Origin: Takakia lepidozioides
Taxonomy: Eukaryota > Plantae > Bryophyta
Reading direction: 5' to 3'
Assembly: GCA_030704615.1 (NCBI GenBank)
Contig: CM060732.1
Span: 73,904,001-73,968,000, forward strand
Length of the DNA: 64,000 nt
This document shows, piece after piece, positions 874 to 64,000 of this stretch. Position numbers and translations under genes: made by a program. The notes under the pieces were generated by a model that did not search any database, was not told where the DNA came from, and was given only the letters and a program-made list of their open reading frames with translations. The first letter of the stretch is position 1. Every line of letters starts with the position of its first letter.

Positions 874-1214
874 TGAGAGTGAGAGAGAAACCTTCCGTTT
901 CCCCCTTCTTTGACATACAACATAAGAGAAAGACAGAATGTAGTCATTGGACTTGGTTTCCCTTAGCCTTTGTCACCAGCAAGGGAGAGGGAGAAAAGAA
1001 GAAATGTATACATCCATTGGAAGCCATGGGACTAATAGATAGCTAAATTAAAACCAAGGGAATCATATTTAATAAGTTGGCATGTGGATCTTGGGGTCTT
1101 CACAAGCAAGTGCAATCCTCATCTCGGGTTTTAGGGGAAAAGAGAGTGATTCATGAGCAAGAGGATGGATGCTTGGATGGCGGGCGGATGGTGGGGTGAT
1201 TGTCTGGGAAGCAG

Positions 1215-1306
1215 GTGATATTTTTGGAGACCATCTGTAATGACCAAGCTGTGATCGACTTCAATGCCTGTGAAAAGATAAAGGCCAGCCCCGACTATGT
1301 GAACAT
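1215..1306 (+). other. F2KP alternative exon A (92 nt, [30 protein letters not shown]), duplicate of exon B
   Basis: cag|GTG...AT|gtgagt; same length and phase as exon B; no stop codon. Confidence 0.8.
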
Positions 1307-4300
1307 GTGAGTGGCCATGTGGGTGCTAGATTTGGCAAGTGCCCTTCAGCTCATATCATCCTTCCCTTCCTTGCCTCTGTGCATTTTGTGCAGGTCATTT
1401 TTTTGGAGACCATTTGCAACGACCAATCAGTGATCAACACCAACATTCAACTGAAGATTCAGCAAAGTCCCGACTATGGTGATGTGTGAGTTGCTGCAGA
1501 GAGTGTTGCTCCTCCCACTGTGGTTAAGATGTAAAGTAGCCAGAAGAACAGGAAGTGGGTAACGCACCATTTTTTGCACTCGATTCCACCCACTGCAAAG
1601 ATTGTGGACCCGGCTTCCATACAGGCTTCTGGTGTCAGGATGCCTGCTTCAATCTGCAGGGCCTCGTGCCTTTTGATAGCCACTTGCTTGGAAGTGGCAG
1701 AAATGGGCACATGCTTGGGACTCATCATACATGCCAACTGATGAAGTGTTCTGGTTGACTGCCACAATTTTTTGGTCATATGCAGATGAGAGTGTGCGTG
1801 TAAAGATCCAAAGCTGCATATAGTCCATTTCAAAGTGCAAGGGATGTTCCAGAAACAGACTTGTACTTATAAGGAACAATAACGCCAACCACATGTTGTT
1901 ACCACACACACACTCAGCTGCTGTTGTATGGAATGTCCCTCTCTGCATGCGCAGCCACTCATCCTTTGCAAGGGATACCCTTTGCTTGTATTTGTCAAGA
2001 TATTTCCACTCAGTTAAGGGTACAGTAGGTGAGTCTTCTGAGTATTAGTTCCGGACAGCCCATAATGTGTCGTCAACTTGTTTGTGTAACCACTTGGGTC
2101 CACGTTAACCTTTGCCCACTTTTGGAGCCCTGGCTAGAAGGCTGCTGGGAAGATTGATTTGCTTAAGGCAGGCGGTATGTATCAAGTGTTCTATCTTTTC
2201 TGTACACAATGTTGCTCAAGAACCGTGTTGGGGTTGAATCTTGCCATCCTCTTTTTTCTGTGCAGTCTAGCTATCATCTAGTCTAAAAATCCAGGTGCCC
2301 TGACAGCCATTGTTGGCATGCTAAGGCTATAGGGAGTTTGATCTGGGCTTACCATTTATAACTTACTATGGTTCCACCCCGCCTATTCCAATATTACGAG
2401 GCACTATTCAAGGAGACACCCTAAGCCCCTACCTATTATTATTCAGAAAGCCTCATTTGGGATCGCGCTCCTGCAGCTTCCCACAAGTTGAAATCACAGC
2501 TATGGAGGTGGTGCTGGGTGATCTGTTTATGAACCAGCCCCAAACCTCTGATCTGGGTTACGATTGATTCCCTCTTATCCTGTTTCATACAATTTCGCTT
2601 GGAGTCTTGTTCCCCACAAGTTATAACAACCATTGAAATGGGGCGTGGTTATTGTTGATTATCAGTTTATGAACCACCATGCAATCTGTGTGATGTCCAG
2701 GCTTACTCAGAGGTCCTCAGAGTGCAAAGTTGTTCTGCTTTTTGTTGTAACAGGCCCGATTATGAAACTGCCCTCACAGACTTCAAGACCCGCCTTCTGA
2801 ACTATGAGAAGGTGAGCCATACATGATCTCATTGACCTGGACAGAATTTTTGAACTTTTGGAAGGAAGTTGTAATGCCAACGCACATTTTAGTCCAGAGT
2901 GTTTGTGTTGGCATCATTTTTGACTGTATGGTGATTTGTGATCAGTGCCAAGGTGGTGCCCTGTAAGCTACACGTCTCAAAGATCTCTAATTGATTTCAA
3001 ATTGTGATTCCCTTTTGCCAGTCCTTGGAGTCCTCTTTGTTTTTGCAGTTTGAATTCTAATGTACATCGTCTACTCCACCCCGAATTCCTCTGATTTGGT
3101 ACAGGTTTATGAGCCAGTAACTGAAGGCTCCTATATCAAAATGATTGACATGGTCAGTGGCGAGGGAGGCCAAATGCAGGTGAGCTTGACAGTGGGTTAT
3201 ACTGTGGTCAGATAGTGCTCTGCTGGGTTGCTTAGCTTGCCCCCACAAGCCCAAGTCTCTTAAGACAACCCATCACTGTTCTAGGCAGCACAAAATGGCT
3301 CCTCGTGCATCATCTTGTGCAGAATGTAGAGCTGGTTGATAAGATTCATCGTCGTCATACTGTTTTTTAAGAGGCTGAACTCAGTTTGGCAGATGCACAA
3401 ATCCTAGATTTAGTTCGAGGCATAATTGGAAGTGCAGTGACATCATGAATGTTCCTCTAGACTCATGGCTACTGCATTTGCAATCCATATTGATGATTAA
3501 TTGACCATACTCAATAGGGCAAATGTTGTGGATGTGCAGGTGAACAACATCAGTGGATACCTACCTGGCCGCATTGTCTTCTTCCTGGTATGTTTAGGTG
3601 TTCCTTGTTGGGTTACACCTTCACCACTAATAACATAGGTAGTGTACATGAGCTCAAGGTTGTCAAATAAACCATTTTAAAACAGTGTCCAATTAGATGT
3701 CTGATGTCAAAATCGACAGAACTATACCTCATATAAATTGCATGTACCATGTTGTGTGGCTTGTAGAGATATACAACCACAGGTGACTAAGAAGTCCTGG
3801 ATGTATTGGGCTTCCAAAGGGTGCTCTCATGTGGTCAGTGTAGGCTCCCGGGATAGGTATTACCTTCTAGGCCCAGTTGAGGCTTACAAGTCCTGAGCTT
3901 GCCATAGTTGGTCAGCACTTGGTCTGAGATAGCATGCTCTCTTCCTGTGTCTTGCTGTAAGTCCTTTGATGACACCTGGGAGCCTATTCGTCTACCCTTA
4001 GATTTGTGAGATTTCATTACAAGATCACAGGAGTTACTAACACTTGCTTGCAAATCACCCACGCTATCCACAGCATTGAGGCCACTTACTACTGTATCAG
4101 CACGTCAAATCCACACCAGACAGCCTTTCATGTCACTGGTGTTCCCAATTCATGCATAAGAGTATCTGGTGTCACATCCACCATGTGACATGTAACATGT
4201 TCAATTACATGTTACAGACTGGCAGTGAAAGACTTTTAAAGTGAATTTTGGGAATGTTGGGACTTTTTTTTTGTTTTCCTGTAGGTGAATACACACATAA

Positions 4301-7300
4301 CACCACGGCCAATCCTGCTGACTCGGCACGGGGAGAGCCAGGACAATGTAACGGGTCGCATTGGTGGTGACCCTCTTCTCAGGTAATTCCCTTTTCCTGA
4401 ACTCAAATGGTAACCTTCAACACCTTGATGAAACTGCTAATTTTTATCTAGCCATAAGAAATATTTTGTTTCTTCCCAGTACTCATGAGGGAAAGCATCC
4501 TGCTGTACATAGTAGATGTCTAGTCCGTGGCTTAGCTGGAGACTTTTTCAGTTAACTCCTTTATCTTTTCAATATTGCAGAGAACATGGTGGACACACTT
4601 GTGGTGGGTAGTTGCGCGACTTTTGAGTGCATGTACTGCCTGTGCAATTGTCTTGTAGGAGCTAGCTTCTGGTAGTGGACTAAATCAAACTTGATGTGTC
4701 TGTCAGTGAGGCTGGAGAGAGGTATGCGCTCAAGTTGGCCGATTTTGTAAACAAGCGGCTCAAAACTGAGCGCACTGCCTCTGTAAATACCTTGAGCCTT
4801 GTTTCTCTTGTGATGCATTTGAATTCACACGGCCAGACATGCCTTCTTTCTTGTTTCTATGTCTCTGTCTTTCATTATCTTTGCATGACCTGCTCTGTGG
4901 ACCTTAGTACCATTTTCCTTTACAAAATTGTGAGTTTCTGGTACTCCGTGAGTCACTCATGGCCACCCATGCAGTTATGGACAAGCACTTTGAGGAGGAC
5001 ATTAGTTACGGCACGCCACATCGTTGGGTTTCCTAAGGTATAGTAAATTCATATGCTACTTCACTGATGGAGAAGTGAAAGTCCTCAGCCATGCTGTGTA
5101 TGGTTTCATTACAAGGCTCAAAGATTCACAATTGTGGATAGGGTCCTTAGCTGCTAGACATTGCAAATATCAGCAAAGGCAGCAGCCTTTCAATTTTGGC
5201 CTAATTATTTCCGGTTAGCTTCATTAACTGAGAATGCTGTACAAGGCTGTCTTGCCAAGAAACTCTTGAAGGTCTGTGCAGGTCCTTGATTGCACCCATC
5301 CACAATGTTTACACAGATGTGAGTGTTCTATGTGCCTATAGAAGAAAGTCAGTAGCTTGTGGCCTGGCATTATTCCATTTCTTGACGCACTTGGATGTGT
5401 GGCTCAACCAAAGGATGTGGTTACAAATCAGTTTAACAAGTTATAAGTTGAAAAGGTGCAATGGCGGGCTCTGGATGAAATCAATGCTGGCGAGTGTGAT
5501 GGAATGACATACCTGGAGATCAAAGAGTCCATGCCTGAAGAGTACCAGTATGTGACCCTTACCTTCATCACAATCTTCCTCATGCATGTGGCAAACACAC
5601 ACCTTTGAATGACATCCCCCTTCTTGCTAGTAGCTTCCTAAATTCGCCTTTGGGAGTAGTGAAGCATCGCTCGGAATACCTTAATAAGGAACCATTCCTA
5701 TGCCTGCCATGTACCTTTTTCCCCAGCCTTGAGCTGCATCAGAGTGACTATTTGGATCTGTTGTGGCGGAAAACTGCAAACCTAGCTGGCAAGACTTAGT
5801 GAAATTGGGATCTATTGGACGAAAGCTTTGTGGCAATGTTTACTACGTAAGAGCAGCCTCGTGCACCTCAACAGGTTAGCATTAGGTTAGGAACATGAGA
5901 GCATAAAGACGTGCCTTGTTCATATCTGTCAGCCTTCTTCTATCAGGGTGAGAAATTCACCCTTCTGGTCTTAAGTTTGTACTTGAATGAAGAATGGGAG
6001 GTCCATGATGCTACTCAAGTGCAACTCTTACTAAATCTGGCGCATTTTCCTCAGTTTTAACTGTCATTTGTATCTTGCACGGGGAACTAGATATTGCATC
6101 ACAGCAGCCTTGCAATATCAAAACGTGCAGCAGTTTTCTCTCTCAAGTGACCATAATGAATAAATCAAGGCCTTGTCAGGTAATTGCCATTTTAATCGTC
6201 TTATTACACAGGGCTCGGAAGTTGGATAAGCTCAGATATCGATACCCACGTGGGGAGTCCTACTTGGATGTCATCCAAAGGTACACTTTTGAGACACTGT
6301 GTTGTTGTATTACAGGTCTCATAGCTGGTTGATAGGGCTGCCCAGGCATATTTCTGACTAATTCGACTGTGGGGGAGGGTTGGTGCAGATTAGAGCCAGT
6401 AATAATTGAGTTAGAAAGGCAACGCTCACCTGTAGTGGTGATTGCCCACCAAGTGAGTACTGTGTCCTTTTCTTCATGCCAAGTCTGAGCCCAACATAGG
6501 ATTTCTTTTTCGGGCTATCATGATGTAATGTAGGGTCTGCGGGTGCTCGTACTCCTGAGAGAGAAGAAACCACGTCTACCAGACAGAAAGAAAGAATCAA
6601 AGAAGAATGATATCTATCATGGTCCAAGGAATACAAGCAGAACAACACAGAAGAATCAGAATGATTGTTCTAGGATAATTTTCCTTCCCCTCACATTAAA
6701 GAGGGAATAGAATAGAGAGATGAGGGGCTGCTTGTTGTTAGACATGTATGTCATAGTGTAAAGGATGTGAATTTGGATAAGTTGCCTACATCTTACACTG
6801 TGGTGGCATCAGGCTATACTGCGCTCTTTGTATGCGTACTTCATGGACAAACCTCTGAAAGAAGTTCCACATATTGAGGTTCCTCCCTAATTCCCTCTCC
6901 TCAATGTACTCATGATTGAAGTGTTTTGTTTTACTACATTGCCTTACTACCATAGCCTCCATGGCTGACGATCAACATAATTGCGTGATGATCTTTGTTT
7001 GGAGCCCCTATAGCTCTCTCACAGCCAATGCAGACCATTTGGAAGACTCAGTTTTACTGCGGTTGGTGCTAAATTCAAGTGGGACAGTTTGCAGTAAGGT
7101 AGAGCATGCTGTTACTAACTTCAGGACTACTTGTGATAGCAGTGGAGCACTAACCATCACCTGTCAGTATGTTGAGCCTGTGAGGTCAGCCAAAGCATGT
7201 AGTATGTCGATGCGTACCTCGCATGAGTCTTAGAACGGCCCAGAATTTACTGCTATATAGTCAGGCTGTCTTCTTCAGTTATTCTCAGCCTTTGGATGGG

Positions 7301-7420
7301 ATGCAGATGCCCCTGCATACAATCATTGAGATCCAACTGGGAGTGACGGGTGTACAAGAGAAACGCTACAAACTCATGGAAACAAGCAGCTGGGTTCCAA
7401 GCCATGACATTGAGGGGTAA
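1215..7420 (+). CDS. F2KP: Bifunctional 6-phosphofructo-2-kinase/fructose-2,6-bisphosphatase, 3' part (5' exons lie upstream of the window). Exons: 1215-1306 or 1394-1485 (alternatives), 2754-2811, 3105-3179, 3540-3587, 4285-4382, 4707-4782, 4975-5037, 5456-5547, 6212-6280, 6389-6452, 6813-6878, 7307-7420
   Basis: All exons are AG/GT bounded and phase-consistent. Spliced peptide includes IFLETICND...[38 protein letters not shown] (phosphatase RHG motif), [37 protein letters not shown] and [24 protein letters not shown]. Confidence 0.96.
1394..1485 (+). other. F2KP alternative exon B (92 nt, [30 protein letters not shown]), closest to the canonical plant sequence
   Basis: Pyrimidine tract plus cag|GTC...GT|gtgagt; LKIQQSPDY as in angiosperm F2KP. 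Confidence 0.92.
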
Positions 7421-9026: not shown

Positions 9027-9894
9027 CAGTGTTGGGCGGTTCTTGCATTTGTGAAGGAACCTTCGGTTCCGGTTCCAAAATTATTTCAAGAGACGGTTCC
9101 GGATCCGGTTCCGGTTTTTTTTTATTGAGCCGGTTCCGGTCCGGTTCCGGATCCAACTTTTAAACATGGGGGCGGTTCCGGTTACCGGTTAGTTGCTGAT
9201 AAAAACCATCGGTTCCGGTTAGGTTCCGGTTCTATTTTAAATATATATTTGTTTAATTTAATTAGATTTAAAATATTTTATCAGTCCGGTAGATTAAATA
9301 GCAGTGTATTCACATATTTGAACTAAAATCCAACGATTTTGTTAGTTTTCACTAACACAAAAAAACAAACAAAAATACTCTAAATAAACTGGTAGAAGAA
9401 AATGGGTAAAATTTTATGGGTTGAAAGTACTATTCAGCTACCTGGCAAGTATTGGCATCTTCAAACATTTTATTAATGAACTTAGCCAGGATATCATGGA
9501 GCTGGAGATTGAACCCAAGATCTCATGGCGCTGAAGCATTGAACATAGAATCTCATGGCCTTCAAGCATTGAACCCAGGATCTCAGGAGCTTAAGAGCAT
9601 TAAATAAGTTTTTCCCTGGGCCCACCAGCCCCACCAAGGGGTCAAGAACCAAGAACCGGACTTAGAAGCGCTTTGGTAGGTACTAGAGACATTTAGGGCT
9701 ACAGCCCACGGGTGGACCGGAACCGGAACCGGAACCGCTTTGGAGCTGGAACCGCCGGTTCCCACACATGTGGTCGTAGCTGGAACCGCCGGTTCCGGTT
9801 CTGCACAGGCGGGTCGGGTTCCGGTCCGGTTCCACATAACCGGAACCGGAACCGGCGGTTACCCGGGGCCCAGGCGGGTAACCGCCCAACACTG
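9027..9894. mobile_element. Non-autonomous hAT element (MITE)
   Basis: TIR CAGTGTTGGGCGGTT...AACCGCCCAACACTG; 8-bp TSD GTATTTAC (9019-9026, 9895-9902); many subterminal CCGGTT/GGAACC repeats. Confidence 0.92.
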
Positions 9895-11690: not shown

Positions 11691-13035
11691 ATCGCATATT
11701 ATGAAAGTCGTACCATGCTAATTTATTTTGTACCACACGTCGTGTTTGTAAATGCCAAAATCTCTTGATTTGTATCCTTGCCGCAAATATATATAACACG
11801 CAACCCAAATGTTTGACCAAACCACTTGTTAGTTTGAAGGGTCCATGAAAGTATTGTGATCACAAGATTTTCTGAGCTCAGCGATGCAAAAGGATACAAA
11901 ACATGCCTGAGCCCCAGAGGTTCTGGTAACTTTAGTTTTGGGATTGTCTTATTCATTATTAGCATTGTTTGACATTATTGTTCCTAGTTTTAACTTGATT
12001 AGGTAGAGAGCCCTTGTCCCCTTCTCTCTTCTTTTTCTTTCTTTTTTGGTCTGTTGGGGGAGGAAGCCTTGACCCCTTCCTGAAATAATCTTAAGAGAAA
12101 ACAAATTGTGTAAGGGGTGTTTGTTATTTTCTTATTTTGGCACGCTTGGAGACAAAGGGGGGAGGAGCCGTTGAGCGAGAGTGAAGGCGTAGCATAACGG
12201 CTCCTGTCTCTCTGTCTGTCTACGCACCAGTCAACAACTATGGCGCGTTGTTTGTCCTCCACAGTGCCACCCTCACATCGTGACAAAGCCCACCGTCTCA
12301 GGGGCGTCAACTTCTATACATGGGAGCTGATCTTACTGTTTGATTCACAATACCCATCTCTTCAAATCTCACTCTCTCCTTGATTTCCCTCTGTCTTCTG
12401 TCTGTGTTCCCATCAGACCACGCTGTGGTGAGGAGCGCGCAGAGGCAGTTCTGGTGCTGAAAATGCATTACGCGTTACCCGTTGTCTCTGTGTCAGGTTG
12501 CAGTGCGTTGCGGTCCTTTCGGGTAGTCAGCACCTAAGTGAGACGCATGCACTTAGGGTGCTGGTGGAAGGCTGCCCCTATTTTTCGGTGGAGGTTGTTT
12601 TCTGGAAGTGTGTATGTCTGTCTCTTCGGGAGCTTGCGTGGAATCCGTCGGAAGCATTGTAACTCTTCGAGCTGCAGCACCACCTGTGATCATCATCCGC
12701 ACCGAACCGTGGCTCTTTGTTGTCAAGTTTAGGATAACTGTACCATTCCTTCTCTGAATTCACCATGTTGACTTGGTGTACTTAGTTTCGGTCGTCATTT
12801 CCTGCTTTGAGCTGATAGGATCCAATGACATTCTGTCGCCATTTGTTTTCTTACCTGCCAATGCATCCTAATCGTCAAGTTTAGTCTCGGTTTGCCGACA
12901 AATCAGCTACCTTCCCTGATACTCTGAATCTCAATTGGAGCCATCAATTTGGAATGCTGGGCGAATTTCTGTGCCTGCAAAGTATTCAGCACATTGTCCC
13001 CGTCATCGAACACATTGAAATTTCCACGTGTGGAG

Positions 13036-14325
13036 ATGGAGGCAACAGAGGTTAGATCGAAAGGGATGGCAGATACTGCTGGGGAAGAGCAACATCGGGT
13101 GGTTTTGGATGGGGTGGATCAACAAAGGGGAGTGAAGAGGACAAGGCGTGATAGGGGTTCTTCTGCCAAAGAGCGAATCAGCAAAATGCCGCCTTGTGTG
13201 GCGGGGAAGAGAAGCTCAATCTATCGAGGAGTCACAAGGCATAGGTGGACAGGGCGATATGAAGCTCACCTTTGGGACAAAAGTACTTGGAATCAGTCCC
13301 AAAACAAGAAGGGCAAGCAAGTATACCTTGGTGCGTATGATGACGAAGAGGCTGCAGCACGTGCTTATGACTTAGCTGCTCTGAAGTACTGGGGCCCTGG
13401 CACTCTCATAAACTTTCCGGTGAGCGACTACACAAGGGATGTTGAGGAGATGCAGACTGTCTCAAGGGAGGAGTATCTCGCTTCACTCAGAAGAAAAAGC
13501 AGTGGGTTTTCAAGGGGAGTCTCAAAGTACCGTGGGGTTGCGAGACATCATCACAATGGGCGCTGGGAAGCTCGCATAGGCCGGGTGTTTGGAAATAAAT
13601 ATCTGTATCTGGGGACTTACAGCACGCAGGAGGAGGCCGCAGCAGCCTACGACATGGCAGCCATTGAGTACAGGGGCCTTAATGCTGTCACCAACTTCGA
13701 TTTGAGCCGTTACATCCGCTGGCTACGTCCAGGCCAAACCAACGCCAACAACCAAGATGCTGAGGAGGGCAGCCCTAAGGCAGGGGACGACCTTCCGTCC
13801 CCTGGGGATGACCAGTCGGCAGTGGACGACCATCAAGCCCAAGGGTGGCCTGGGCAGGCCAGTAAACCATACCAGCTTCCTTCGCTGGGGCTCACACGTC
13901 CAAGTGTCCCACAGAAGGGAGGAGCATCCGCCCCCACAGCTCTCAGTCTCTTACTACAGTCGTCAATGTTCAAGACCATGCTTGAGCGAGCCTCTGCTGG
14001 TGGAGCCACGGATGTTAACCCAAGACATCATGCTGGGGTGGAGCTTGGCAGCCGCAGCCCATTCCTGGCCCGCCACCAATCAGTTATAGCAGACGAAGGT
14101 CCCCAAGATAGTCATTACGAAGAGACCGGTGGGAATCCCGAGCTGTTCCATCGAAGTCTACACCACGATTTGTTCTCTTTGTACAATCACGGACCTTCTG
14201 CGATCTCTCTAGCCCACGACCCTGGGCAATTGCAGGCAAGGCTACACAGGAGCCAGGCTATTGCATCTCCTAATTTAGACAACCCATGGGGACAGTGCAG
14301 CAATTGGCAAATTGCTAGCGTGTAA
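13036..14325 (+). CDS. SMOS1: Double-AP2-domain transcription factor, SMOS1/At2g41710-like (ANT/WRI lineage), intronless
   Basis: [59 protein letters not shown] signature; second AP2 repeat [20 protein letters not shown]...[11 protein letters not shown]. First ATG is at 13036 (the ORF track uses an upstream TTG). Confidence 0.88.
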
Positions 14326-16219: not shown

Positions 16220-17430
16220 TAAGGTGTACTTCAGCTGGCAATTACATCCCAGAGAAGCATCTTTTATGGAGGGGGCATTCTAGCAAACGAGCATCGAGTT
16301 GGAGGGCGTCTCTATAGAAACAGAGAAGGAGTATATGCTGCTCTGTATGCTTGGCTGTACCCTGTTCCCAGCGAAAGAGGTCAAGAATTTGACTAAGGAT
16401 TGCAACGTTATGGTGCAACTGCAGGCAATCTCTCATCAGCCATCCATGGCCAAGTCACCAGCATTGCAGCTCCTGGTGACAACCATTATTTCAGTCTTAT
16501 CTATGTGTCATCGCAGATGGAGACATTTGGAGTACACCGCAGGAGCTCTGACAGCTGGAATTTGCAATGAGACTTGTCCCCAGAGTTCCTCATACCTACC
16601 AAGGGCCTAAGTTTTGCGAAGCTGCATTACAACTTATTGCTGGATAGTGGCTGGATATTGAGCCTTTTTGGCAATGCACCCAGTCCGAAATTTTCCGTTT
16701 CAAGCTGGCCCCTTTGGCTTGGGGGCATCCCATGGGGCGAATCTCCCCCGCTGTCGCCTTCTCATTCAGTACCTTAGATGTGAGGGTGCAAAGTCCAACA
16801 CCAATGTTAGTGCTGTTTTCCGTGCAGTACTTGTGGAAAGAGTCCCAACCTTGCATTTCGAAGGTCTGGCTTGAATGGGCACACTCTTGCAGTGGAAGGT
16901 TCATGGAGTAATGAGTCTGGGCAGATGTGCTTGGTGGCATGTCATGCTGGTGCAAAGAACAGCGATATGAGTGGTGATTGTGATATCAAAATCTGCCTCC
17001 ACATTCGAGCGGCTGTCTCTCTCAAGCAGCGCAGCATTGTGGAAGGCACCATTTCCAGCATCTGGCCTCTCAACCACTCTAGTTCATTCAACCAAAAACA
17101 GCTTCAGTACAAGTACGACGACATCAGGGAGGTAGGTGCAGTGATGGAACGGTATGAACCTAACCTCGTTCGGTCCAGAATCCGGGCCAGTGTGTTTCGT
17201 TACCCTTCTCTCCATGGACTTGATGATTACAGCATCTTAAGCAGAGATCTTTCAGTGGAACACTCCTGCTTCCCCAGCAGAAGCAGCAGTCCAGGTTGGA
17301 TTATCCGAGCTTTAGTGTGCTTGCACTTGAGGACCACATGACAATAAACTGGAGGGAGGAGAGTAATTTTACCATGGTTCCAGAGGGGACAACCGCGTGA
17401 AGATTTGCTACCATACATTGCTGATATTGG
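16220..17430 (+). pseudogene. DUF2921-family (plant membrane protein, E3-ligase-related) pseudogene fragment
   Basis: EGVSIETE..MLLCMLGCTLFP, TLAVEGSWSNESGQMCLVAC and DCDIKICLHI...SLKQRSIVEGTISS are spread over several frames with stops. Confidence 0.65.
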
Positions 17431-34450: not shown

Positions 34451-36880
34451 AACTCACCTCACCGCTGTTGGGTAGGTTACAATAAAATTGTGGGGAAAGT
34501 TTTGCTTTAGGATGTCGAAGTTGATATTACGAACTCGTTCTTGAGCGCTCTCAGTGTTGTAATGTATAGGGGAAGGGCAGTTGACGAGGGCGGTAGGCCG
34601 AGTTCACAAGTTTGAAAACGGTGGAAGGGCCGAGTCAGCTGCCCTACATGCCCCCCCCCCCCGCCCCCCCAAAAAAAATTGTCATCTTATGTATTTCAAA
34701 AGGCCCTGGTGCCTAGGTGTCTTATCATTGCCTTGCGTAAGGTGCATCCTCCTGTTAGGATAAAAACTTGGAGCAGCGGACGAATGGCAAGTGATGGGAA
34801 GTATGAATGATGCATGTTTTTCAAGTTTTTGATTTTTACAGGGGACAAAATTTATTGTCTATAAGAATTGATCGCAACAATAGGTAATTTGATGGTGTGG
34901 TTTTTTTCAATGATTTATACAAACATGTGGGGTTAAGGACGAGTGTTGGTCTGGTAGTGGGTCCAGTCCTAGGTATGAACCCGGGTATTAACTATTGTAT
35001 CGATCTACCCTATTAGTCGGGTCAAGTGTCAACCCGATCATTACCATGCAATGCTCAAGGTTGCCTAGTAACCAATACTAGCTCTGTACCTAGGTCATGT
35101 CGTTCATCACATTGTGATATTAGATCTTAGGTTTGGGGTTTTTGGGGATATGTTTCGCATTTGTATTGGTATTGCAGTGGGATGCTTGAATAATGGATAT
35201 CAATGGTAGAGGGAGATATTTTGGCACTCAAACTGATTTTATGAAGCTTCACTACCACCACTGCCATTGTTGCACTTCATTGTGGACGGCCTCTTCTAAC
35301 TTGCTAGCAAGATATTTTAATCCATTTTATTGGCTATACCATGACTTGGGTTGATACTAAGTGAAACCTGGGCTGATATCACTTAAGATGTATCTATCCA
35401 TCAATGTGTTTCTCATCCCACGTGAATATAGTTATCGAGGATGGCGGTGGTTCATCCATTGAAGCATTGGATCGGGTCGGATCGGGTCGGATCCCAGCCG
35501 TCCATTCGACCGTCGAAGTGGCGGGTGATGACTAGAGGAGAGAGAGAGGTGCCATCCTGACCCTTGGTAGAAAAAACCACCCGTGTTTTTACTCCTTATG
35601 GTAAGTTGGGGGGTGAAAGTTGGTAAGCACGCCTTCTTTAGCAGCCCACAACTCATCTTTGTCACCCCGCAAAGCCGGACTTTTTTTCGATTACTAGCAA
35701 GTAATTCTTAATGATACCATAAATTTCAGCGGCTTAATCTACATATACCGTTGGGGAACTCATGACACTATGGGACCAATCTCTATTTCCAAAGAAATTG
35801 GATTTCTTAGTCCCGATTGACCTATTCAACCATCAATAGATCACAGTGATAAAGGATAATGAGATCAATAGTATGTTTGGGAACAAAATGTGTTACACAT
35901 TGCAATGGAGTAATTTGGATGAACATACACACGACATAAGACACAAGTCACTCTGGTATCGGGTGGTCAAGATATTGTCCTCCTTAATGAAGTTCAACTA
36001 TGTTGAGGTAGGATGTGATACTAGTAGAAGTTTGTACATATATCTCCTCATTGGTATATGGAAGTTAGGTGACGTGTGAATGCTCATGTCTTGAGCATAA
36101 CAATATATTTCATGTATTCTTTGGATATCTAGAGAACATGCTATGACAAAACAAAATCTCTCCATAATGAACTAAAGATTAGATTGATCACTTCATACAT
36201 AACCAAAATGTAGGAGATTAGTACAGTATTGTCAACTTCATGCCCAAATAATTTGATGAGAATCTTGTTCAAGCCAGCCGTTCCTTGTACTCCTCTGTTG
36301 CATCTTCTTTTATATAGATAAGGTTTTTCGTGACTCACTACTGCTGTTGAAATTCGAGTGCGACCATTTGCAGGAGGAGTACAAGAGCAACTACATAACA
36401 TGAATTTAATCACACCAATCGTTTCTTGGAACTTCACTTTTGCATGGCAAGTTAACCGTCAACCCTACTAAGTTTCCCAACGGTGACTGTTCCTTTGTTT
36501 TCCAAAAATAGAAATGAGCAAAATTAGACAAAGGAACAAAAAGTTGGAAGAAGCTCAAGTTTTTTCGGAGACCTCAGAGACAGACTGCTCTCATATAAAC
36601 TTGTTGAACATCTCCTTAAATCCCATTCTAATCTGCGCTTGCTCTCTCTCAGTGGGTGATTCGCAAGCAGCTAGTCATCTCTCACCATTGCAAGACCATT
36701 GCCGAGTGCTAGTGATATCAAAGCTAGCTGGGACATTCGAAATCTTCTCTCAGTGGGCGATTTACAGGCAGTTAGTCATCTCTCCTCCCCACTGCCAAGT
36801 GCTAGTGATCTACTTCTTATCTCAAAGCTAGATCGGACATCAGAAATCTTCTCTTACGTTTGCTTTTGTTTGTTGGAAAA

Positions 36881-37312
36881 ATGAAGTTGTTTTTACCAAT
36901 TGAGGATTTCCTCCTGGCAAATACTTGTCAAGTCATAAACATTAGAGACAACGTGCTGATGTATCATGCAGATGAGAGTCAGCCCTTGTGGGTGGCTCGA
37001 ATAGATGACATATTCAAGGATTCCCTTACTGGAAAAATAAATGTGGCATGTTGTTGGCATTATCGACCAAAAGGTTATCTTGGGCGAGAGGCTCATCATG
37101 GTAGGAACGAGCTGTTGTTGTCAGATCACGTTGATTTGAACAAGGCGGATGCTATCGCCCGCAAGTGTAATGTCTACACCTGGAAGGAATACAAGGACCT
37201 GCATCTGGAGGTTGGCGAAGATGACAAGTTTCTTCAGTCGATACAAAAAAATATGCAATATCACTCTGAATACACAAATGATTCACCACAATTACTTTAC
37301 AATGTGAACTAA
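36881..37312 (+). pseudogene. Isolated intronless BAH domain (EBS/SHL-like) lacking a PHD finger
   Basis: DNVLM...PLWVARID...VACCWHYRP...HHGRNELLLSDHVD...IARKCNVYTWKEY..L.EVGEDD. Confidence 0.7.
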
Positions 37313-49526: not shown

Positions 49527-52500
49527 TTAAGAGTCATAAATTTTGCGGACTTTGCCGATGGGTTGCCGACATATAGGGCACGTTGATGCATCTCCTCTTT
49601 GTATCCTGCCAGATGCCATGCCACAACCACATAATGAATATTAGTTGTCAAGGACTCCTGGCCCCCCTGAGGCATCTACTGCACATACTATCTTTTGGAC
49701 CCAATCAGCCAACATTTGTCAACTACCCATCGGAACAAATCAACAGCCTCAAGAATCTTGCAGCAACAGTACAGTGATTTCTGTAATGGGCAACATGAGC
49801 AAGGACTATCACTGATACTATCACTCCAACTGTGTGACCTGTAATAAGCAGTTCATGCATCATACGAATGGGTTCTTTAGGAAGGTTTTCATGTACGATG
49901 GGGAAGAAGAAAGAGACGCACCTAAGGCCACAGGAGTAGCAGGTGCAGTGATGGCCACAAGGATAAAAAAAACTGTCCTTCGGTGCATCCAAACACACAG
50001 AGCAAAGCTGTTCATCGGAGATGTTTTCTCCCTGCCCCACAACATACTCGCCCGGTGGACTGGAGGTTGGCAAACTTGGGGGATAGCTTTCTGTAGAAGG
50101 GCTAGGTGGTGTCTGTTCCTCCTGTGATGAAACCAGTGGAGCTTGCTCCAGACTTCTGGGTGGTTGTCTGCCAAGGAATCCTGCTTTTAGGCCCCACACC
50201 ACAAAGAATGCTGAAGCTAACAAACCTGCAAATACAAATCCATGTGCTCCTTCAAAGTTTGGATATATGAACTGCCATAATAACTAATCAACAAGTAAAA
50301 TGCACAGAAACACGGGTTAGCTCCAAACTTGCAAGAGCACTCATAGCAATGACTGTACCTTTGACTTATTGTGGGCTTCGCTCCACATGCAGGGTTTACC
50401 ATTTACAGATTCAACCTGTCTCCATGTCTCCATCTAAATGTCCTCTTTAGAATTTTTATGGCAAAGTTGATCAACAACCACAGGAGATAGGATTACCACC
50501 CGATTCAACATGATAGCAAGCCAAATGAACCTTACACTCTCTTCAACCTTGAAAAATCAAAACTTCATTACCCAATGTTTTCCAATCTAAACCCTAACCT
50601 GTATGAAGCCTTGGGAGTAAGAAGCACTACCACATACCCCAGAATAAGAGGTAGATTGCCCAGCGTGCCGCATATGACACCTCCACCTCCCACACATCCA
50701 TTCCAAACTGCATTTGCCAATTCCAACTTAATAAGCCCTAGGACGTGCTGACAAGAACCCCCAGTGTTCACATTAGCTCCAAGGCTTTGTAAAGAAAACT
50801 AGTTACAAAAGATCTTGATGATCTGACATGATATATCATATGTGTTCTGTGAGGAAATTAATGCAATTGATATGTAGCCATAGACAAATATATAGTAGTA
50901 TAGGCCGCCTACTCCTATACGCCATAAACTAGATCAAAGGACTCGCTGCATTAGAGATGCAGCTAAATTGCATTTGCAATGCACGGTTTTGGTCCAGACC
51001 ACTAGTTATGGTCCAGGCCACCATTTCCTAACCAGGAATAAAATAGTGTTTCCCATTTGATTCAAACGTTAGGAGAAAGATAGTACCTGTACCTCCTGAT
51101 TGGGGGTTGTCAAAAGCACACAGCGGGAACCAGGAATCGGGAGAGGAAATATACAATGCTCTGACTCCACTGTCAAGGAGCACCTTTGATCTACCCCTTC
51201 AAGTGTGTAAAGCTTGCTGTGCAAGTTGAGATGCAAAGAAAACTGTTTCCCAGCCATCCAATCCACCTTATTTAAAAAATATGAGAGAACTTAATATCAT
51301 TGTGGCGGGCCATAGACAAGAACCCATTCAGCCCATTATAGGTTCAGCCATCTCTTGCAGTCTTTGTATCTTGTGGGAGACCATCCTTCCTTCAAAGGTT
51401 GGGCTAGCACACCTTTCAGACACATGATGTAATAATCAACCTCCTTCAAGAGCAAAAATGGAGATCTCTCCATCCCTATTCCCCTTGAAACATAATTGAG
51501 GTTGACCACATCTCAGGAAGATGGAGCCACTACTAGTCAGTCTTCAGTTTAAGTGCAACACTCCATAGGGTGACATTACACCTAAATGAGCTATTAGCAA
51601 CCATAAGAAGGCAGAAAAAGTTTCGTGTTCCAACATGGGACCAAATTGCACACTCCCATGTAGATCTCTGCATAAAAATCAAAGTTTTGCTATACAACAC
51701 ACCTGAACCTCATGATGATTGAAATTGCCGAAGGCAACATAGTACTCATCATCTTTGTCTGCCTTAAAATCTACGGATCCACTACCTGCACACCAGACAG
51801 CCTAAGTCAGTCAAGAGAGAGGGGCACCAACTCCATGGGATTGACAACTTTTTGTTACAAACAATGCCTTCAATCACCACTGTCTGAGCTGGACCAATCT
51901 TGGTAGACACATAATCCAATACAACTCTCATGGTGCTGGATACCTAGGGTCAACAACATGTGGCTTATTTCCTCTGCAGAATTTGAGTGGTGATGGACAT
52001 CGTTTAAACCTCACCCCTTCCTCAGTAACATGGCAAGGAAGGTCACTTACCATGGATACGATACCATTGTATTGACGTACTAGGATTACTAGGATCATCA
52101 ATCCACTCCTTCAGACCATCTTTTCCTGCCATTCCTCACCACCTGCTGTCAGTGAATTTTCACTATTATTTATAATGCTCGGATGGAGTCTTACATGACG
52201 TCCCTACATTATCTTGAGATGCCACATCCACAGAGAGAACAAGGGGTCGTTGCAAAGGCACAATCACGGCCCCTTGGTCATTTCTTACAACCAGACAAAC
52301 CTCCACTGCTGTCTCACTAGGAAAAACCATACATTAGCTTTGTGAATTCAAGCCATAGCATCTGAAGAAATGCTCAGGTCAGGCATTCAGAGAGGCAAGC
52401 ATTTTACCTCGTAATATTGCAAGCACCAAAGTGTCTTGTGCAGATCCCTTTATATCGTGCACCAAATCAAAAGAGGAGCCGTTGTTCAGCCAAAATGCCC

Positions 52501-60713: not shown

Positions 60714-63700
60714 GAAATGAAATGAAATGAAATGGTGCTTTATAACGTCCGCGGAAAGCTCGTAGAGCTTATGGGACAAAATGGAAGAAAACATGAGAGA
60801 GGAACAAATCCAGAAACCACAATTAATGTTCTAGCGATTGTCTAAGGGTGAAGGCCTCGTGTAGGTAGGCTGCCACGCATTTTTGATCCTCATAGTGAAA
60901 GACATCAGTGAGAGTTTGGGTTCCACTGAATAAACAGTGAAATCTCCCACGGATCTCGTAGTATAGAGGGCAGTAGAAGAAGTGTTCTTCAGTTTCAATT
61001 TCCTTGCTGCGCCCTATGCAAGCTGGACATAGGCGGTCCTCCCGTTGCAGGTTTTCCCATCTGCCAGTCTCTATCCGTAGGTTGTGGGAACCCACCCTGA
61101 ACCGCCCCAATGCCCTCAAGAGGGAAGGAGATAAGGGTGCTGAAAGGTAATTTGGTCTCAAGATTCTATCATCGCGGAGCACCAAGAATGTCTCTCGATA
61201 GAAGTGGAGCTTTGTCGTGAGATTGGGTAGCATCCAAGTTCTCTTGACATGTAATTCCATAACCTCTCTCCGAATGAGTCTGTTGCGGTCATGTCTGGAT
61301 GTGATGTCCGCCTCATCTGGGTTCATTGGTAATAGGAAAGCAGTAGAAAGTCCGTTACGTTGAAATAAACTGTCCACTCGAGCATACCAGGAGTTCCTGA
61401 AACCTGCAGCTTTGAGCCTCATAGATGTTGTGAGGGCCCTTGCCACTAGCCCTTTGGGTGGAAGGGCCTGCAATCTATGGAGAAAGATTGTAAGCCTGAA
61501 GAGGGCCTCGGATTGCAATGGTACACATGCGAACTCTGCACCTAGGATCCGAGATGGAGTTGTGCTCCTGGCGCCAAGCATTGCTTGGAGAAAAGATGAC
61601 TGTAATGGTTCCAAATTCTTTTCCCACCAGGAGACAGGGACACCAGGCGCCCAGAACTCACAACCATAGATGGTAGCAGGGCTGACGACGGTGTCAAACA
61701 GCCACTTTTTGGACGGGGGATGCCGCAGATGTATTTGCTTGCATTTGGCCTGAAGGCGGACGGAGGCCGCCTTGCCTTTAGTCAACCTGTCCAAGGCAGT
61801 GGCTGCAAAGTGAAACTTGGGGGAGTGGATAACCAGACCTAGGTACCGGTATGATTTCACAATCTCAATTTCCTGCTGGTTGAAGATGAATCTACGATCA
61901 GCCTGGCCATTGAAGACCATGATCTTGGTCTTGCTAAGATTGACCTGCATCCCATAGTCTTTGCAGATTCCAAAATTTTGAGATGGCGTTGCAGAAAGAC
62001 CGGGGATTGTGCCAAAAGGGCAACATCATCAGCATAGAGGAGATCTGATTGGGTTGGTCCCCCATCCAATGGGACCCCAACCCCATGGTTTTTTGATATG
62101 TAATTCTCCAAGGCGTCAATGTAGATCCCGAACAGGGTAGGTGAAAGGGGCCAGCCCTGTTTGACTCCAATGTTGCTGTGGATCTCGGCTGAGAATTCAC
62201 CAGCGATGTTGACCATGCCAGTGACAATCTCATACATAGAAGAGATGGCACAAAGGATGTCTGGAGGGACTTCCACTCTATGGAGCCGTTGGAAGAGAAG
62301 GTCCCGAGGAACTGAATCAAAGGCTTTGTGAAAGTCCACGAAGCAAACATAGACCATTCTTTTGTCATAGCGTGCACTTTCCACCATAACTTGAAGAGTG
62401 AAGATGTGGTCAATAGTGGATCGGTTTCGACGGAAACCAGCCTGTCCCTCAGCACGAATGCGAGAGTACTCAGCCCAATCATCCAGTTCCATGGCCACTA
62501 CTGCCCCAAACAGTTTAGCAAGTAATGAGGACACCATGATAGTACGATAGTTTGTCGGTGCGAGCCTGTCACCGCTCTTAAAAAGTGGGTGGATGATGCT
62601 CTTTGTCCACTCTGTTGGAAAGCCCCGTTGCACCACCTCATTGAAGAGGTTAGCTATAAAAGGGGCTAAAGTAGGTGCAGCATGCTTGATGAATTCACTC
62701 TGAAGTCCTGAAATGTCCACCGCTCTGCCATTTTGCAGCTTCTTGATTGCCTTACTGACATTGGCTGTAGTAAAGAGAGAGAAGTGAAGGGGTTTAGAGG
62801 TTATAGGAGAAGGAGTTTGGGTTGGGGAATGGTACAAAGACTGTGCATACTCATGCCAGACATGAATGTCAGTGATTGGGGGGGGATCTCTATGAGGTTT
62901 AAGGAGGGACCAAAAAGATCGAGGAGAAAATCTGATTTTAGCAAGGAAAGAAGATTGCAACTTGATAGTGTAGGCTTGCTTTTTGGATCTAATGAGGGAC
63001 TTATAGTGCTTAAGAGCAAGATTAGTGGACTCTGGAGAAGAATTGGTATCAAGTAGTAAAAATTTGATGCAACGTCTAGCAGTCTTGCATTCCTCATCAT
63101 AAAATGGTGCGTAACGACGAGTGGAGAAGGGTGAGGAGGTAGATGGAAGGGTGACGGGAAAGGATCGCAGGGCTGAGTCCCAAAGGGCTTGAGTAAGATG
63201 TGTAGCCTTGTCGTTAGGAGATGATAGATGTAGAATGGAAGGGAGGGTTGACGCAAGGTATGTTTCATACTCGGCGTCGTGTAAGTGAGAGAAAGGGGTA
63301 TTAAAGTGGATACGTGGGTGTAAGGGAAGAGACGCAGAGGGGATCCTCACGGGGAGGGAGATGGAAGGAAATGCAAAGGAAAGGCAAGAGTGATCAGAAT
63401 CCGGGTACCTCGTGATGTAAAAGGAGCTTATTCTATCCGGCTTGTTGGGGCTCCCCAAGAGATAGTCAACCACGCTTTGGCCCTTGTACGTGTGGCAAGT
63501 GAACTGGCTGGAGGATTTGAAGTTGGTTGTTCCATTGTAAATGGATAGCCCCTGAGTTTCACAAAACTTGAGTAGATGGTGACCGTAACTTGTGATTTCG
63601 CAAGAGGAATCTGCACTTTGCCTCTCCAATTCCGTATGCGAGCGTTGGATGTGTAGAGGATCTGTGTGGTCGAAGGTGGGGGCCTGTAGTGATCCTGTAC

Positions 63701-64000
63701 GGGCGTTGAAATCTCCAACCAAGAAAATGTCCGTTTGTGGGGTACGGAGACAGGCCATATCGTCTTCCAATGGAACATATGGTGAATCTGTTCGAATATG
63801 TAGGCCGCTGTGCGGAGATGTGGCCGGAGCAAAATAACATCCCGCCAGCAGGATGTTGTAGCCTTTGATGTGACACCAAATGTACCTTGCCAGTGGGTCT
63901 TTGTATGGGAAGGAGATAAGTGGGAGAAGCCAGTCAGCAAAGTAACAAGCCACACCTCCAGATCCTTTGAGACCTTTACGTGGACGAATCACTGACTGAA
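60714..64000 (-). mobile_element. Long non-LTR retrotransposon (APE + RT + C-terminal Cys/His domain; RTEX or CR1/L2-like), frameshifted near 61965; 5' end outside the window
   Basis: APE motifs GGVACY, GDFNARTG, VDY, SDH; RT motifs NYRTI, QAGFR, FVDFHKAFDSV, GVKQG(W)PLSP, LLYADD; C-terminal RFRVGSHNLRIETGRW...CPAC...ETEEHFFYCP. Confidence 0.95.

Follow-up and report, generated by a model that had tools for sequence, protein, structure and literature searches.

In the bryophyte Takakia lepidozioides, two homologous copies of one exon of the PFK-2 kinase domain, here called A and B, lie side by side in an F2KP gene at the start of the 64,000-nucleotide stretch of DNA that was analysed (the window). 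An old, lineage-specific duplication of this exon at the ATP site of F2KP is, as read from the genomic sequence, considered real, and the two copies are probably used as a mutually exclusive pair. For the full reading, in which tandem duplication produced such a pair and with it an F2KP whose kinase site is altered, we estimate a probability of about 0.65. The features on which this reading is built are listed in Table 1.

Table 1. Features of the F2KP locus, in window coordinates
Feature	Position	Strand	Remarks
Exon A, candidate minor alternative, a diverged copy of the kinase-domain exon	1215..1306	+	30 codons and 2 nt
Exon A acceptor region	1163..1214	+	G-rich, AG-free, without a pyrimidine tract, AAGCAG end
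A-B intron, 87 nt	1307..1393	+	predicted branch-point-like CTCAT/ATCAT, followed by an AG-free pyrimidine tract of 44 nt
Exon B, the canonical form of this exon in plant F2KP	1394..1485	+	
Next constitutive exon, common partner of A or B	2754..2811	+	starts in phase 2
Further F2KP exons (n=10), to the stop codon	3105..7420	+	RHG phosphatase motif included
First five of these ten exons	3105-3179, 3540-3587, 4285-4382, 4707-4782, 4975-5037	+	
Last five of these ten exons	5456-5547, 6212-6280, 6389-6452, 6813-6878, 7307-7420	+	

The original prediction described two homologous exons of 92 nt each, running from phase 0 to phase 2, separated by 87 nt and each provided with a CAG acceptor and a GTGAGT donor; on re-measurement, all of these values were the same. 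The copies are identical at 20 of 30 residues and at 61 of 92 nucleotides, and 8 of the conserved codons differ silently. A profile of this exon, scanned over the 64-kb window, matched at A and B only (62.8 and 51.5 bits), and the likeness of the two is therefore not due to chance. All F2KP introns in the window are of the GT-AG type. Elsewhere, one Sphagnum gene has GC at the beginning of the intron that precedes this exon (L008 4804-4805, L010 9716-9717).

Either copy, used by itself, is in frame with the exon at 2754-2811, and A or B followed by the 11 downstream exons gives an open C-terminal F2KP of 304 residues with its stop at 7420. When the alternatives were recomputed, inclusion of both copies again led to a TGA within exon B and skipping of both again shifted the frame, so that the either/or use deduced earlier from the frame is borne out: A-only and B-only transcripts are open, while both or neither are broken. 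The exclusion device established for this pair is frame incompatibility alone. No upstream F2KP exon was found in positions 1-1214, and the N-terminal CBM20/regulatory region and the P-loop lie upstream of the window. Since the upstream exon is thus outside the window, a phase-0 upstream junction is assumed from homologues, in which the exon directly before ends in phase 0.

The domain order, a PFK-2 kinase domain followed by a histidine-phosphatase domain with an RHG motif, is that of plant F2KP (Pfam 6PF2K and His_Phos_1). Exon B and one downstream exon match solved PFKFB structures, in support of the earlier placement of the pair in the kinase domain. Over approximately 295 residues, the B form is 85-89% identical to bryophyte orthologues, with 89% to the F2KPs of Sphagnum and Marchantia, and in a tree it falls among the bryophytes with no supported grouping with either mosses or liverworts. 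Intron positions around the exon are the same in plant F2KP genes elsewhere; the genes examined have a single copy of the exon, whereas the Takakia gene has two.

The remainder of the window holds several unrelated features. A segment at 9030-9893 has CCGGTT/GGAACC repeats at both ends, an AT-rich middle and inverted-repeat-looking ends, and is MITE-like by eye. A 465-codon open frame with two AP2 domain matches is located at 12928-14322 (+), and LINE-like endonuclease and reverse transcriptase frames at 60826-63998 (-). The exons at 16811-17338 (+), 36809-37309 (+) and 49726-50283 (-) match DUF2921 N-terminal, BAH and RING-finger domains.

Judged by its residues, exon B is the standard copy: only one of them is unseen among 77 plant variants, whereas exon A has six (Phe16, Ala18, Cys19, Glu20, Lys23 and Ala24). 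Exon A is 8 residues away from its nearest variant, while most plant variants have a neighbour within 1-2 residues. At the conserved codons, A and B agree at 46 of 54 nucleotides, compared with 35-44 for either copy against other genes, and they have rare bases in common; this mutual closeness suggests that the duplication arose within this lineage, and along with the adjacency and homology of the copies it upholds the proposal of a tandem duplication. Silent differences affect 8 of 20 conserved codons between A and B (40%), close to the 100 of 227 (44%) between the Takakia gene and Sphagnum, which indicates that the pair is old, as far as a small and partly saturated sample of codons can date it.

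On profile scanning of all homologous loci compared, a second copy of the exon was seen only in the Takakia window. A single copy is present in Marchantia, Riccia, Calypogeia, Physcomitrium and Ceratodon, in three genes of Sphagnum type, one further moss gene and one gene of fern type, and in numerous, redundant angiosperm metagenome contigs, about 10 of which are mRNA and unable to reveal a duplicate; the survey covered mosses, liverworts, a fern-type gene and angiosperms, the Diphasiastrum locus being without this exon. Some metagenome contigs hold copies of the exon with an in-frame stop (L056 43-135, L083 3739-3831 and L084 4006-4098), which are pseudogenes or errors. A comparison of exon A with 1.84 billion representatives returned only a B-type exon and three junk matches, with no A-like protein, and none was present among the F2KP homologues compared. 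The search for exon A in related genomes that had been proposed with the original prediction thus went against it, exon A being absent from every relative tested, all of them distant species. Among the loci compared, the pair is so far lineage-specific; conservation across species is usual in mutually exclusive exons of tandem-duplication origin but is not essential to them.

Coding constraint on exon A was assessed by simulations in which A drifts neutrally and B is limited to silent changes. Twenty identical residues together with 8 silently different codons were obtained with P up to 0.03-0.07, and the earlier argument that the silent codons imply constraint is weak in that form. The constraint on A itself stands on the core residues that were kept: exon A retains 12 of the 13 columns that are invariant in 70 plant F2KPs, the exception being Leu20, and in the same simulations P was <=0.006 for ten core residues kept with at least 7 replacements, <=0.003 for the first 11 residues kept, and <=1e-4 for 20 residues kept with 30 nucleotide differences. 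The replacements are clustered, with none in codons 1-11 (P=0.006), and all six novel residues lie in the helix before SPDY, where the differences had been placed earlier. Several of the replacements are changes of 2-3 nucleotides beside the conserved Asn17, Lys21 and Ile22. Despite a nucleotide divergence of 33% from B, exon A has no stop and no indel, and its AG and GTGAGT are intact. Taken together, these tests speak for prolonged selection at the protein level, with a changed profile, rather than for uniform decay. Both exons show good signs of coding constraint, on a small sample of only 30 codons per copy and with statistics that were picked after the sequence had been seen. Against a functional exon A stand two radical changes, Leu20 to Glu and Ile18 to Ala, which would fit a damaged protein just as well; use of exon A may also have been lost very recently.

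The acceptor of exon A is the weakest and least pyrimidine-rich in the gene, pyrimidines making up 35% and G 52% of its 40 nt, compared with 80% pyrimidine at exon B, and this suggests that exon A is probably the minor form. Within the 87-nt intron, candidate branch adenines are predicted at +47 and +52 from the A donor, where the steric limit in animal pairs is roughly 50 nt (PMC7969005). As introns of 71-91 nt are spliced beside this exon in other plants, this distance is suggestive only. Around the exons, RNA pairing of the docking/selector type did not exceed that of shuffled sequences (p 0.22-0.97).

It is conceivable, though rather unlikely, that exon A, once an alternative exon or else simply a duplicate, is now left unspliced and is decaying within the intron. 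The G-rich acceptor without a pyrimidine tract, the six residues unseen in plants, the absence of exon A from all relatives tested and the neutral probability of up to 0.07 for the silent-codon pattern would all fit such a decay. The intact splice sites and open frame do not, nor do replacements that spare the conserved core and are clustered rather than scattered, and a similar G-rich acceptor occurs at the same exon of a moss gene (L009).

An improbable alternative is that exon A serves mainly as a poison cassette, with the A+B frameshift lowering the level of F2KP mRNA through nonsense-mediated decay and the protein likeness being a leftover of duplication. The early TGA in the A+B product would suit this role, and an intron of 87 nt is spliceable in plants, given those of 71-91 nt that flank the exon in other species; however, a poison exon needs no conservation of residues, and in exon A the silent sites have diverged while the core residues stayed. 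Very improbable, and largely refuted, is an origin of exon A as the remnant of a larger F2KP fragment (a paralogue piece or an assembly duplication) that was constrained in a former home and not at its present place. Positions 1150-1190 briefly resemble the exon two places upstream, but a remnant of that exon was rejected there since the resemblance is not significant by profile (E 2.4). Moreover, there is no trace of adjacent exons or of common flanks, A groups with B, and the 33% divergence of the two copies shows that they are not an assembly duplicate.

Returning to the preferred reading of a mutually exclusive pair, an alignment-based model of the Sphagnum F2KP, with low to moderate confidence at this exon (pLDDT about 55-60), presents it as a strand, then a helix at exon positions 11-24, then SPDY. 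The corresponding stretch of PFKFB2 has one lysine, which we take to be Lys174. Lys174 is placed at the ATP site and described as essential for kinase activity (PMC12097583). The ungapped alignment puts the PFKFB2 lysine one residue past the invariant plant Lys21; the two are presumably equivalent, and the exon would encode a strand and the helix bearing the animal ATP-site lysine. Simple helical geometry would place the kept residues 10, 13, 14, 17 and 21 on one face of the helix, with the changes at 20 and 24 bordering that face. The likeliest consequence for the A form would be an altered affinity or regulation, probably with lower kinase activity and with the phosphatase untouched.

A comparable remodelling is found in the second F2KP of Physcomitrium patens (XP_024403353 cluster), where the same stretch before SPDY has TTR for IQQ (P0089/P0228). 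It differs from the Takakia case in stemming from gene duplication rather than exon duplication and in the residues involved, with NI-LK kept, and it suggests that this segment is tunable in bryophytes. The same Physcomitrium proteins and P0054 from Adiantum are long-branch F2KP paralogues with FLEILCND for FLETICND in the exon, which may reflect either a second F2KP lineage of shifted function or convergence.

The course of events that would best account for these observations begins with the tandem duplication of an F2KP kinase-domain exon in a deep-branching bryophyte lineage. Copy B would have stayed standard, while A would have been kept by protein-level selection as the helix lining the ATP site was remodelled. 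One exon would be used at a time, B by default with its strong acceptor and A as a minor or regulated form with its weak one. Inclusion or skipping of both leads to a frameshift and an early stop, and nonsense-mediated decay would presumably remove the products; the joining of A to B may also be impeded by the short distance from donor to branch point in the 87-nt intron. The phosphatase domain and the conserved residues of the ATP site would still be present in the A form, and its 2-kinase activity would most likely be lower or differently regulated, shifting the set point of Fru-2,6-P2.

Substitutions derived from tandem exon duplication are well documented in animals, with 236 events catalogued in human (PMC8373072), and known examples in metabolic enzymes include exons 4a/4b of OGDH (PMC7969005) and pyruvate kinase M1/M2 (PMC11464654). 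As in animal pairs, the two Takakia exons are neighbours and homologous, agree in length and phase, are separated by a short intron whose candidate branch point is close to the 50-nt limit, and would exchange a functional patch in a metabolic enzyme. Unlike those pairs, they occur in a plant, in one lineage so far, and are known here from genomic sequence alone. The paper on the human catalogue does not mention PFKFB in its main text (PMC8373072). Amongst plants, FLM/MAF1 of Arabidopsis likewise has two mutually exclusive exons, the second of which is lineage-restricted (PMC3266260); the FLM exons are of 19 and 15 residues, the second being described as cryptic, whereas the Takakia exons are full-length homologues in the active-site region of an enzyme. 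A literature search for mutually exclusive exons with F2KP or PFKFB/Pfrx found no paper. To our knowledge, homologous mutually exclusive exons are rare in plants, and a review only lumps them under 'others'. A more far-reaching version, in which Takakia has an animal-style splice switch of the F2KP ATP-site helix that yields a conditional kinase-low or phosphatase-dominant isoform and is one of many such pairs in the genome, is tentative and somewhat doubtful.

F2KP sets the level of Fru-2,6-P2, which regulates partitioning between starch and sucrose, and the known regulation of F2KP is by metabolites and by phosphorylation of the N-terminal domain, not by an exon swap (PMC8733343). If the present reading is true, a splice switch in the ATP-site helix of F2KP would constitute an undescribed layer of control. 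The pair would also offer a natural variant with which to probe the role of the plant-invariant NI-LKIQQ segment, and it bears on the question of whether homologous mutually exclusive exons are rare in plants, or in flowering plants only.
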